A DNA stretch of 63,813 nucleotides, counting the filler, from Cercozoa sp. M6MM (Eukaryota > Protista > Endomyxa: Ascetosporea): assembly GCA_040357565.1 (NCBI GenBank). It is 12 parts of 12 records of this genome, joined end to end, with 100 filler letters (N's around TTAATTAATTAA, not from the genome) between each part and the next. Parts side by side here need not be neighbours in the genome. Positions count along the whole stretch, not along the records: positions 48,777 to 54,446 come from JBDODJ010000867.1; 11 more parts are not named here. One strand, written 5' to 3'. The position numbers and the translations under genes are program-made. This document shows, piece by piece, positions 48,777-54,546 of the stretch. Under the pieces are notes generated by a model. It was not told the origin of the DNA and did not search any database. It saw nothing but the letters and a program-made list of their open reading frames with translations. Numbering within the stretch: the first letter of the stretch is position 1; the number at the start of each line of letters is the position of its first letter.

Positions 48777-49990
48777 AAAGACAGTACCCGACGTTCCTCG
48801 CGCAGTTGCTGTGCACGCGTGTTCGCCTGCGGTCTGTCCCTGTACACTCTTGCTTTAACCCCCTCTTTATCCCTCTGTTTACCCCCCTCTTTACCCCCCT
48901 GTTAACCCCCCTGTTAACCCCTCTGTTAACCCCCCTCTTCCCCTATTAACCCCCCTGTATACCCTCCTCTTTACCTCCTTTACCCCCTAGAAGAAGAGTA
49001 CCCTTGTGCACCCTGAGCACGCGAGTGTTCCTCCGTGTGTCGCTGTGCCACATCGGCCATGTCCTACCAGATCGAGGAAGGGGGGTAAAAGGGGAGGGTA
49101 AGGGGGTAAAGGGGGGACAAGTACCCTGCGGAACAGGTCGACGACCTGCACGCGCGCTTCGGCTTTGTCCAGAGGCATGGCGCCTCGCTTTCGCCTCTGT
49201 GCACGGTCCAGGTCCTTCAGTGCACTACGGACAGGTAAACAGGGGGTAAACAAGGGGGTAAACAGGGGGTAAACAGGAAGGTAAACAGGGGGTAAACAGG
49301 AAGGTAAACAGGGGGTAAACAGGGGGGTAAAGCCAGGCCTACATCGCTTCCAGTTCGGCCAGCAGTCGCTGCGCGCGCGTCAATTCGCGCGAGTTTTCGC
49401 CTCGCATTCGTACCTGTCTCGGGGGGGGGGGGTTAAATTNNNNNNNNNNNNNNNNNNNNNNNNNNNNNNNNNNNNNNNNNNNNNNNNNNNNNNNNNNNNN
49501 NNNNNNNNNNNNNNNNNNNNNNNNNNNNNNNNNNNNNNNGGGGGGGGGGGGTTAAATTAATGGGGTAAATGGGGGAAGGGGGGTTAAATTAATGGGGTAA
49601 ACGGGGGGGGGGGGGGTAAACAGGGGGGTAAAACTACAGTGCGCGCATCGCGACCGACGCGAGCGACGATTTTGTTGCGCTCGTCGACGCGCTCCTTCAG
49701 TGCGTCCAGACACTCCAGCAGATCGCGCTTGTTCTACACACGCAGCTTTAAACATCGACAGTTGCCTGTAAAGTACCCGTAGTGCCCCCTTAAGTTAAGC
49801 CCCCTTAAAATACCCGTTGGAACCGGTCGAGACCCTCGTCATTGGCTTGATTGGGCCCGCCTTCTTCCGTGTCGCCCAAACAGGCTGCAAAACCTCCTTT
49901 CAATCAACACACCGAATGCAGAACAGAGCAGGCACCTCGTTCGATCTGTCGCAGCTCGCGCACGTAGTTGCGCAGCTGCACGACGTCCAT
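48777..49990 (-). CDS. Hypothetical coiled-coil protein, 3'-truncated
   Basis: MDVVQLRNYVRELRQIE...; ALKDLDRAQRRKRGAMPLDKAEARVQVVDLFRR; repeat-filled GT-AG introns. Confidence 0.5.
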
Positions 49991-50201
49991 TTTTCTTTGT
50001 GATTGCTTTTTGGACTTTTGCCTTCACAACTACAAGCAGCACACACTAGTGCAGCAGTGTGACAGTACTAGATAACACTCGCTCCAGCGTGCCACACACG
50101 GAATGACGCTAGCACTGGGCGCTTGGTTAAGGGTGTGTATATAGTGGGTCAGCATTTGCCGCACAGATAGAGTGCACAGTTACTTTAACAGACTACCAGC
50201 C

Positions 50202-50842
50202 ATGCTTACAATCGAACAGTTTCTCCGATTTCTGCTGACTGGATTGTTGTGGGGTACACTTCCACAATCCGATCATGTTTGAGACCACGTGCGTTTTTCC
50301 CAGGCGCCACGAATCCGTTCATCAACTCGGCGAACGCAAAGAAGGACAAAAAAGAAGGAAAAAGCACGTCGAAGCAGAGGCAAAAAGATGCAGAAAACAG
50401 GAGCAAAATCGCGCAAATCGCCGCCGAGATTTTTGCCGTGTTTCGCAACTGGCGCGTGCGTTTTTCTTGCTTTCATTTTCTGCTTGTCATTGTTTTAAGG
50501 GTGCACGTGCGCAGTTCCTGCTTCCGTTCGGTCTGAACCAGCTCGGCTCGGTGCGTTTCTCTCGCGGACACAAGTTTAATCTGTGAACTTAAGGAAGCGT
50601 ACTTGACAGGTGTCGTACACGGCGTCGCTGCAGAGTGCGCCAGTGTCGCTGGCTTTGCCAGTTTGGTAGGTCTATAGACTAATGTTTTAGTGAAGTGCAG
50701 TGGTGTTGCTGTCTGTAGCAATGCGCTGGCCTTGCTGTTCACTGCGCTGGTGTCGAATCTGCTGGGAGAGAAACGCCTCACGGCCAGGGGATGGCTCGGC
50801 ATCGCTCTAATCGTCGCAGGCGTCGCTGTCTCCAGTTCCTAG
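50202..50842 (+). CDS. TMEM234: TMEM234-family (DMT superfamily) small membrane protein
   Basis: Spliced LLWG|ATNPFIN...FLLPFGLNQLGS|VSYTASLQSAPVSLALPVC|NALALLFTALVSNLLGEK..GIALIVAGV. Confidence 0.88.
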
Positions 50843-50991
50843 GGTTGTATTGTACTGCGAAGCTAGCATCTGCAGCACACACTGACGTCGCACTCAACAC
50901 TAACTCTCAGTACTCAACAGTATGTACTCAGCAAAATTAATACAACACAGTACTATTCCGTGAGTTTCCGTACAGTCTATACATAGCTCGG

Positions 50992-52110
50992 CTACTTGTC
51001 AGAAGGCGGAACTGTATCGGGATCAATCGGATCGATCTCATGCGACTGCTTGCCATGCAGCAAGTACTGCGCGTACAGTGTAGTGGAGAGTCAGACTGGA
51101 AGCACAGTCCAAGGCCTGCAAAATCCTAAAGTTCTACTGTACCAACGTGAGAGGAACGCCAATGCACACGGCGACTGGAAAAAAGGATGGCATAATACTC
51201 TACACAGTATCGTTACATGTAGCTAAGACCTCTGATGGTAATGAGCAAAAAGAAAAGGCACGGATGCACAAGAAACACAGAATGGCGAGCACCGTCGTAT
51301 TTTTGCGAATGTAGCCCCAGCAGCAGCTTCAAGTTTCATCAAATGCATCCCCCCTGTACACCAATGTTGTCCGAATATTAAAGTTCCCAGTACGTATCTC
51401 TGCCGCAGAAGGGTGGGTGCCCTCGAAAGCGTTCCCAGTCTTCTGCACAAATCAAAGAACCGCTTATGTCGATGATTGTACTGTACAAGCTGTACCGCAG
51501 TCGGCAGTTTGTCTGGGTGGCCTCCTCGAGCTCACCCGTCGAGTTCGAGTACCGCTGTCACCCGCAGGTTCATTGACACCAATACTACTAGTGGCATCTT
51601 GCAATTGCAATTGTGTTTCTGCTGCAGGTCGCCATTCAAACGGCTGGAAAGGGCTCAATGGAGGCACCTACAAAACGATTCAAAACTGAAATTAAAAAGC
51701 ATGTGGTTGAGCTGGACTGACTGACCAAGTTGACGTTGGGCGGCGGTGGGTGCGAGTGAAACACCTGCAGGTCGACGTCCTTGTCACTGCAGAACAAACC
51801 TTGACTTCCTGCATGGACCGGCACATCTAGCGTGGTCGCGAAACCGTCGTTATGATCAAAGGAGTATCCGTTTGGATCAACATTGCTTCGGTGCAGTTCG
51901 CGAAGATCGTGCATAGCGTCTTGTAGGTGCACTGCGCTTGGAGTCGCAGGCGGTGCTACTCATGTATATTTAACCAGTTCATAAACAAAAAACACACCTG
52001 GAAGAATTACACTGTACCGATAGAAACTTAATTTGTAAAAAAACGCAACTGATAGTGAAATATGACATCAACTACAGCATGAAGACCCGTGTGTGATGGA
52101 AACTGCATGT
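50992..52110 (-). CDS. Hypothetical multi-exon protein
   Basis: Coding-like exons (HLQDAMHDLRELHRSN; PLSPFQPFEWRP; HEIDPIDPDTVPPSDK-stop); structure not fully resolved. Confidence 0.4.
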
Positions 52111-52288
52111 GCCTGTGGCACTAATCAAGTCGCCAGGTCGCGCATCGGCAAAAGCGACGTGACTGGCTTCGGACTTGGCAACTTTTGGTGACACTCAGTT
52201 TTTAATTTGATCCGAGACCTGGGAACAAGGAGGCGTGTGCAGTGAGTGCAACAGCAGTGGAACAGTGGAGCTGCCGTAGTGTTGTTCC

Positions 52289-52977
52289 ATGTGGCCCGTG
52301 CTGCTGCTGGCGATCGCGTGGTCGGTGCGCGCACGCACCGATGTGTACACGCACAATGCGGCCCAGATCGTCATGCTCGAGTCGTCTTCGCTGGATTTTG
52401 GTACTTTTGTGTCTGCACTCTTCTTTCAAGTTTTGCTCACACATTGTAGAAGGAGGAGAAGCGAGTTGTGATCGTATATCTTTCGGGCTGAGTCAGACGC
52501 CGCCTTTGCAGCCTTCTCTCTTGGTATAGTAGCTTGAGTGGAGGAAACCAAAAGGTCATGTTGCGGGTAACAGGAGCAAACCAACAGTCCGAACAGAGTC
52601 GCCGACGGCAGCGACTTGACTTGCAACAAGCCAGACATTCTCCAATCGATCTCCGCGACAGCCGCTGGCAGAGTATGCGAATTTACCTTCAGTTTGTACA
52701 TTGTGAGTGCACATTGACCCAACTGTACCCGTTTTAAAGAAGCGACTGCGCGTACACACGGTTCTGGCCGACGCGCCGTTGCTGCAGGAGACACTCAAGT
52801 GGCAGCAGCACCTGTCTGACTCTTGTAAACTACTAAACACCGACTCACAACTGGAATTACTCATTTGTTGTACTGTCTGAAAACTAGAGCACGTGTGTTT
52901 GTTGTCTTAGATGGAGACTACTCGGCTGCCACGCGGCTGGTTTGCGCCGAACGCTCGTCGTCTGGGTATTAAAATTT

Positions 52978-53018
<41 letters not shown>

Positions 53019-54352
53019 TTTATATATTGATATATATATATATACAAAAACTTACATATATAAACAACTAACATTCCTGGTATATACTGGTAGTACACCA
53101 CCCATACATAGGTAGTATCGAGATATGTACCTAAATATAGTATACATGTCTCAATGTCAGTACGACCCATACGTCTACTATCAATAAATGGATAAATAAA
53201 TAAATAAATGAATAAATATATATATATTTATATTTATATATATATATATATGTATAAACATGTATTATACAAAGATGTATGAGCATACACGCAGATCGAG
53301 GTGGCTGCGTCTGCTGCCGACGCTGCGCGGCGAGTCGATCAGCACGCCTTGTCGCTTCGCGCCGGCCTTCCTGTGCGCCTCACAACAGGAGACAGAGACA
53401 GAGACAGAGACGGAGACGGAGGCGGAACAAGAAGAGGCTCAAGACCTGCGACTGCTGTTGCGCGTCGAAGGCGGCAAGGTAGACCCAGCGTCCTCGCGGC
53501 TACACGTGTCGCTCCATCCGCGCGGAGGCGCCGACAGTGATGAAGACAATTGGCTCTCAGTGGCCACGGACATTTTGGACTCGGAGGTACCGCAATAATC
53601 TGTATAAATAAATATACTATAATATCTGACATGTCTTGACATGTAATCACAATACAGTAAATAACGTATGCATGGAGCATCTCTCGGATAGATTTTTTGC
53701 TTTATATTTAACAACAGGGTATCCCAAATGCCTATGTTTCAGTACACTTATAATACATATATATCTATATATATTATATATATATATATACATGTATTAA
53801 CTTACATGTAGGATGTCCCCCCCATATATGCATACCCCTGTATAGGAGGACGTGGAGTCCCGCCGCGTGCAGGCACTGCTGCCACTGGCGGTGGACACCT
53901 CGCAGACCAAGCGGTTGGCCGACGTGGCCCTCACGGCCGACCAGCAGTGGCACTCGCTGTCGCTGCAGGCACTCCTGGCCGAGTACGCTGGCCTAGGTAC
54001 TGTTGACTCAGGTACTGCTGACCCAGGTACTGTTGACTCAGATACTGCTGATCATGTACTGCTGTTGACCCAGGTACTGCTGACCCAGGTACTGTTGACC
54101 CAGGTACTGCCGACCCAGGTTGTTTCGACCTGGTGGCACGTGTCTCCTTCGGCGACGGCAGCGGCGCCGCCTCCGCGCTGACGCTGTGTCTGCGCGTCCC
54201 GGCGGAACACCCTGTGGTCACTCTGGTGCGACGTGTCACCCGAGGCAGTGACCTCTCGCTGTGGCCGCTGCTGCACACAGCTTCCGCGCGGACGGTCACC
54301 TCGCTCGCTCTCGGCGTCGTTGACTTGCCCTGCGAATACCTGCGTGGCATGG
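52289..54352 (+). CDS. Secreted/surface protein of unknown function, 3'-truncated
   Basis: Signal peptide MWPVLLLAIAWSVRA; in-frame exons through ...LAEYAGL-G|CFDLVARVSFGDG... Confidence 0.65.
53997..54118 (+). repeat. Intron consisting of 8 tandem ~15-nt units GTACTG(C/T)TGAC(C/T)CAG
   Basis: Direct reading; removing it restores the frame CTA G|GT TGT TTC. Confidence 0.9.
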
Positions 54353-54546
54353 TACGCTGGCTGGGAGGGGGTAAACAGGGGGGTTGAACAACAGGGGATC
54401 CCAAGGGCCGATGTTGCAGGACACTGGGGGGGGGGGGGGGGGGGGGNNNNNNNNNNNNNNNNNNNNNNNNNNNNNNNNNNNNNNNNNNNNTTAATTAATT
54501 AANNNNNNNNNNNNNNNNNNNNNNNNNNNNNNNNNNNNNNNNNNNN

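Follow-up and report, generated by a model that had tools for sequence, protein, structure and literature searches.

The window analysed here is a composite stretch of 63,813 nucleotides, filler included, from the genome of Cercozoa sp. M6MM, a marine rhizarian amoeba whose current name is Lemnamoeba sinaloensis, and the locus of interest lies at positions 48777-54446, which make up one whole GenBank contig of 5,670 bp. The strain was isolated from fish gills; Supernova served to assemble 10X linked reads into a draft genome, and the annotation was made by the train, predict and update steps of funannotate using RNA-seq (PMC11069148). The contig, a piece of this short-read draft (PMC11069148), contains a gap of N's at 49440-49539 and ends in a poly-G run at 54426-54446. 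According to the species description (PMC13746701), L. sinaloensis is placed in Apofilosa, Rhizaria, and its HiFi assembly of 27 Mb carries 13 introns per gene, which average 82 bp and have GT/AG borders in 99.5% of cases. The same source reports that simple repeats are abundant in this genome, a TAA[G]n motif occurring both at contig ends and within contigs, and that an introner signal is absent, its authors suggesting that "some other mechanism" may explain the introns.

Clean exon models, with exons joined by script to check the frames, were built for three genes on this contig, and no stop interrupts the translation of any of them. A minus-strand gene of at least seven exons, at 48790-49990, encodes a charged, probably coiled-coil protein and is truncated at the contig start; the N gap falls within one of its introns, and its last visible donor is GTACTG. 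A complete TMEM234-family gene of five exons and 139 aa follows on the plus strand at 50202-50842, with introns of 50-59 nt and a match to PF10639 on the last exon. The third gene, MHM6MM_007300, lies on the plus strand at 52289-54351, has eight exons and encodes the 393-aa protein MES1915331.1, listed in GenBank as "MAG: hypothetical protein MHM6MM_007300 [Cercozoa sp. M6MM]". Between the latter two, open stretches on the minus strand at 51000-52000, such as a 98-aa ORF at 51636-51932, suggest a further gene, and Pfam gave no match here. What is more, at least five introns of the contig carry a tandem G-rich motif of the TAA(G)n type (GGGGGTAAACAG and variants), with periods of 11-12, 23-24 and 32 nt, in tracts at 48854-48989, 49078-49116, 49234-49331, 49540-49620 and 54365-54385 that run either along or against the direction of the gene. 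In the intron at 48840-49001 of the minus-strand gene, where the G-rich orientation is the sense one, each unit contains GT...AG. The accessible part of the species description makes no mention of an intronic location of TAA[G]n (PMC13746701).

MHM6MM_007300 is an orphan: apart from the protein itself, 1.8 billion representative and 5.8 billion clustered proteins contain no homologue, the whole of MES1915331.1 having matched only itself in a word-index search, and the ORF at 54052-54384 gave neither a match nor a short transcript-derived fragment in a word-index search covering proteins of about 61-194 aa. The stretch 54121-54351 of exon 8 is identical to residues 306-382 of MES1915331.1 (100% over 77 residues, in a search of 1.84 billion representative proteins), and the exhaustive search of representatives with this exon returned, besides the protein itself, three matches at E values of 1e-4 or weaker. 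A cadherin/Ig-repeat fold for exon 8, as hinted at by two giant-adhesin matches with E of about 1e-4, was considered, and these matches are too weak for naming. Pfam found no domain in any exon or in MES1915331.1, an AlphaFold2 model made without an alignment was unusable (pLDDT 31), and the ESM Atlas holds the same sequence, with no usable neighbours. The N-terminus resembles a signal peptide when judged by eye, which is a weak basis for the earlier note's description of a secreted protein.

At its C-terminus, MES1915331.1 continues past the GTACGC donor at 54352, and the intron-like sequence within 54352-54446 is translated as ..VRWLGGGKQGG. Because the contig stops in the poly-G run, the 3' exons of MHM6MM_007300 are missing, and this assembly therefore contains only part of the gene. 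Being an orphan, the gene may lack function. Exon 3 ends at 52672 in the GenBank model, with the donor GTATGC and a 67-nt intron at 52673-52739, while an alternative GTGAGT donor at 52703 would give a 37-nt intron (52703-52739) and add ten residues in frame, which makes this the second site in the gene with two in-frame donors 30 nt apart. Exon 6 contains a (GAGACA)n coding repeat, read as (ET)n, at 53388-53426. Two introns of the gene are long (329 and 259 nt); they are AT-rich, filled by (TA)n and (AATA)n tracts at 52977-53044, 53183-53256 and 53749-53799, and differ sharply from its GC-rich exons.

The tandem array between exons 7 and 8

Exons 7 and 8 of MHM6MM_007300 are separated by a tandem array, which TRF places at 53983-54120 with 9.1 copies of a 15-nt period, 79% matches and a score of 158, and which reaches a score of 179 at a period of 30. 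Eight tandem units with the consensus GTACTGCTGACCCAG occupy 53997-54118, that is, 122 nt or 3x40+2. The TRF result and the listing of units bear out what the earlier note had described, namely an array of roughly 15-nt units joined as AG|GT whose total length is not a multiple of three. The pattern GTACTGYTGACYCAG, with up to two mismatches allowed, occurs seven times on the contig, always within the array, against 0.02 occurrences expected from shuffles, and the array is thus far beyond chance. Outside the array, the unit is absent from the rest of the contig (48777-54446), and two consecutive units found no match in a metagenome scan. RNA folding of 53975-54140 was no better than for shuffles (z = -0.42), Rfam gave no match and there are no tRNAs.

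All units run on the plus strand. The left block consists of three intact 15-nt units (53997-54011, 54012-54026 and 54027-54041) and the right block of another three (54074-54088, 54089-54103 and 54104-54118), the latter with candidate acceptor ends at 54088, 54103 and 54118. Each intact unit begins with GTACTG and finishes with CAG, because of which they abut as AG|GT. Where the earlier note had seen a single degenerate unit, there are two adjacent ones. Namely, a decayed 14-nt unit, ATACTGCTGATCAT, at 54042-54055 has three substitutions and has lost one nucleotide, with GT changed to AT at its start and AG to AT at its end, and the 18-nt unit that follows it at 54056-54073 has an extra CTG and offers the first acceptor past the frameshift (AG at 54072-54073). 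Copies of GTACTG start at 53997, 54012, 54027, 54056, 54074, 54089 and 54104, and AG|GT is found at 7 of the 9 unit boundaries, the two around the 14-nt unit being AG|AT and AT|GT. The GT and the AG are kept perfectly by every intact unit. In translation, a valine/alanine alternation of a 30-nt double unit spans the entire array, decayed copies included, so that the array resembles four double units.

The resemblance does not stop at the borders of the eight units. Exon 7 (53846-53996 on the plus strand, as set by the frame) ends in 14 nt, GTACGCTGGCCTAG at 53983-53996, that are a diverged copy of the unit, matching it at 12 of 14 positions with one gap, which is higher than for all of approximately 1,350 exon 14-mers (P < 1/1350). 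In other words, the first repeat spans the border, with the start of the array as given by TRF (53983) lying within exon 7 and identical GTACTG donors following it. Exon 8 (54119-54351, also on the plus strand and followed by the GTACGC donor at 54352) begins with 15 nt, GTTGTTTCGACCTGG, that make a weakly diverged copy, with 9 of 15 matches in register and P of about 0.01 against exon 15-mers. Judging by these matches, the array is apparently flanked by older, diverged and now coding copies of its own unit, and copies at both exon edges are what one would expect if tandem duplication at an AG|GT junction had built the array. We infer that it arose via slippage or tandem duplication.

Reading frames and productive splice pairs

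Read in the frame of exon 7, the left block gives GTVDS-GTADP-GTVDS-DTADH and then runs into stops, while the frame of exon 8 is open backwards across the right half (..TAVDP-GTADP-GTVDP-GTADP-G), the right block itself (54074-54118) being (G)TADP-GTVDP-GTADP in this frame. The sole frame break (-1) is the base lost from the 14-nt unit. A script was used that listed all GT..AG pairs of at least 20 nt within 53975-54140 and required that exon 7 be joined to exon 8 without a stop. Exactly 12 pairs are productive, combining the donors at 53997, 54012 and 54027 with the acceptors at 54073, 54088, 54103 and 54118, and the corresponding introns of 47, 62, 77, 92, 107 or 122 nt leave between zero and five GT(V/A)D(S/P) pentapeptides in the protein. 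This exhaustive enumeration exactly reproduces the 12 in-frame pairs and the range of pentapeptides claimed beforehand; the largest possible intron (53997-54118, plus strand, 122 nt) takes out the entire array. It also upholds the claim that splicing must cross the degenerate units to preserve the ORF, as only pairs spanning 54042-54073 are productive. Namely, since the central units are decayed and one base has been lost, this stretch must go from any productive mRNA, and the removal of single units cannot repair the reading frame. The unit lacking both GT and AG is the frameshift unit, and it sits where every productive splice removes sequence. Splices confined to one half (53997-54041 or 54074-54118, 45 nt each) retain both the frameshift and a stop, so that the array is as much a liability as it is a designed cassette.

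How does the existing annotation treat this region? Across the array, MES1915331.1 reads ..AEYAGL-GTADP-GTVDP-GTADP-G-CFDLV.., and because only the pair 53997/54073 yields this product, the GenBank intron can be deduced to be 53997-54073, a phase-1 intron of 77 nt on the plus strand. In other words, the GenBank model combines the first donor with the first usable acceptor, keeps three pentapeptides and treats the right block (54074-54118) as coding. The expectation of an intron at the array is thereby partly matched: the GenBank model does contain one there, only it is the 77-nt intron with three units left as coding sequence and not the 122-nt outer intron.

Intron, coding repeat or dead gene

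Micro-introns of about 15-20 nt are known from Stentor and from the chlorarachniophyte nucleomorph, and the earlier note had called the units of the array "micro-introns". However, a unit of 15 nt compares with 37 nt for the shortest local intron (n=17) and with a species mean of 82 bp (PMC13746701); as a single unit falls well short of the smallest local intron, calling it a "micro-intron" is probably no more than a formality. The 17 complete local introns range from 37 to 329 nt, and the candidate introns of the array (47-122 nt) fall within this range. Among 19 local donors, 8 start with GTAC and 5 with GTACT, and the GTACTG of the array is thus of the donor class that is most frequent locally. 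As for the proposed branch-point-like YTGAC, CTGAC is indeed present in each unit, but YTRAY is found in the last 45 nt of only 6 of 16 other local introns; it is thus not a visible consensus in these, and the CTGAC of each unit carries little weight.

The most immediate question is whether there is an intron here in the first place. One could argue for a coding linker, (GT[VA]D[SP])n, in which the missing base reflects a mistake in the draft assembly or a lesion specific to the strain, the annotated intron doing no more than rescue the frame. The same pentapeptide is encoded by both halves, each in the frame of its adjoining exon, and the period of 15 and the sole other indel, of +3, are both multiples of three, which speaks against an intron; the contig, which contains an N gap and ends in poly-G, comes from a short-read Supernova draft (PMC11069148). 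What is more, a gene predictor would put an intron at this place whether it was real or not. That said, Illumina-based assemblies seldom lose single bases outside homopolymers, and the three substitutions in the 14-nt unit mark it as a truly diverged copy rather than the consensus with a miscalled base. The perfect GT and AG of every intact unit likewise count against a plain linker, as does codon usage. Namely, read as codons, the array has a GC3 of 0.19, compared with 0.70, 0.74 and 0.69 in the three local genes, its codons GGT, ACT, GCT/GTT, CCA and TCA are among the rarest synonyms locally, and codon usage as poor as this is found in none of the equal-length windows of the three genes. On account of its low GC3, the array looks like intron and not like established coding sequence, and codon usage favours non-coding or very young sequence, although the test has few independent data points because one 5-codon unit is repeated. 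Moreover, the period of 15, the insertion of 3 nt and the open halves would be expected just as well if the outer units sometimes stay in the mRNA. We therefore regard a purely coding linker as unlikely, and an intron crossing 54042-54073 as likely.

An intron here could also be spliced in more than one way. If several of the 12 pairs were used, either directly or by recursive re-splicing at AG|GT, the protein would come as a ladder in steps of five residues, with a linker of tunable length. Three identical donors face four near-identical acceptors, all in frame, and a splice from exon 7 to any of the internal acceptors recreates a donor, TAG|GTACTG. Published precedents point both ways: IFI6/6-16 and CBS make constitutive use of three reiterated donors (PMC1557585) and the AG|GT arrays of UBC are used stochastically (PMC10809524), whereas F7, LMNB2 and PDGF use only the most upstream of their reiterated donors (PMC1557585). 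Unlike what one would expect of a designed device, splices within one half (45 nt) leave the frameshift and a stop, and in an orphan gene whose structure cannot be modelled (pLDDT 31) nothing marks the site as a linker. Taken as a whole, such a tunable arrangement appears quite improbable. Of its two components, an unregulated mixture of isoforms would be plausible, if at somewhat less than even odds, and regulated "tuning" of linker length is not plausible. Another possibility is that the gene is decaying or spurious, with a real and uncorrected frameshift in a neutral minisatellite of a pseudogene or non-gene. This would fit a protein that matches only itself among 1.8 billion representative and 5.8 billion clustered sequences, has no Pfam domain and yields no confident fold. 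Yet eight exons share one frame via canonical GT-AG introns, their GC3 of 0.74 stands in sharp contrast to the AT-rich, repeat-filled introns, the N-terminus resembles a signal peptide, and it would have to be a coincidence that 12 canonical pairs restore the frame; we consider a dead gene very unlikely.

In our view, the best explanation as a whole, to which we would assign a probability of roughly two in three, is that a young minisatellite, basically intron sequence and spliced across its decayed units, makes up the array. The splicing itself we infer. According to this explanation, the minisatellite would have expanded from AG|GT where exon 7 of the orphan gene met exon 8; two central units have decayed, one of them losing a base, and a phase-1 GT-AG intron of 47-122 nt would therefore be required. 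The spliceosome would be offered three equivalent donors and four equivalent acceptors, and the outer units would be kept in frame as GT(V/A)D(S/P) pentapeptides, their number set by its choice of sites. We expect the donor at 53997 to dominate, while the choice of acceptor would be uncertain, and we put the existence of more than one in-frame product at roughly even odds.

Why would such a locus matter? The origin of new spliceosomal introns is still debated, clear recent cases are few, and the intron density of L. sinaloensis is among the highest known for such a small genome. An intron built entirely from copies of its splice sites, with homology to the exon edge on either side, would exemplify a different route of intron gain, in which a minisatellite in coding sequence or at a proto-splice site grows long enough to be spliced. 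It would also be a natural test of how a spliceosome accustomed to short introns chooses among identical sites 15 nt apart. One may go further and speculate that in L. sinaloensis slippage-expanded short repeats bounded by AG|GT at proto-splice sites are a recurrent source of introns, of which this locus would be a young example with several in-frame isoforms; we hold this to be doubtful, with little more than a slim chance of being correct. The 27-Mb genome carries 13 introns per gene, and according to its describers, who saw no introner signal, introners do not account for this density (PMC13746701). The present analysis covers a single locus of a draft contig, within an orphan gene.

Comparison with known systems

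The extra donors of human IFI6 add in-frame multiples of a repeat unit. [quoted passage not shown] 1995 is cited in PMC1557585 for minisatellites of this kind. As in these three genes, the first tandem copy at the present locus lies across the exon/intron border, and identical 5' splice sites follow one another in succession. The differences are nevertheless substantial. Namely, the unit also ends in an acceptor here, so that both types of site are reiterated, the array makes up the entire intron without a unique core, the unit is 15 nt long and in frame on both sides, and the host is a rhizarian amoeba with short introns, in which the use of these sites is at present a candidate one.

A second parallel is provided by UBC, where, as here, AG|GT at the unit boundaries makes each boundary potentially a 3' or a 5' splice site and splicing from boundary to boundary alters the copy number of an in-frame repeat (PMC10809524). 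However, the units of UBC are ubiquitin domains of 228 nt that are normally coding (PMC10809524), whereas those of the array are 15 nt long, have a codon usage unlike that of coding sequence and include one frameshifting copy that needs to be removed. As regards origin, the array resembles introns gained by tandem duplication in that it is homologous to the exon edges and its removal restores the ORF (PMC3265369, PMC4974935). The known gains of this type are single duplications of an exon segment containing AGGT, tens to hundreds of bases in length (PMC3265369, PMC4974935). By contrast, a unit of 15 nt on its own falls short of intron length, and several rounds of expansion would be needed first.

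Joining exon 7 to an internal CAG recreates a GTACTG donor, much as in recursive splicing. Recursive splicing at ratchet points, that is, at AG|GT sites that regenerate a donor, is known from Drosophila Ubx and from long vertebrate introns. Those introns are very long, however, and nothing suggests that an intron of 122 nt needs or uses recursion. In summary, the locus combines a donor-reiterating minisatellite, AG|GT sites of dual specificity and intron gain by tandem duplication, each of which has already been described. It departs from them in that the array is the whole intron, that both types of splice site are reiterated in frame, and that the repeat unit would have been too small to act as an intron at its first duplication.
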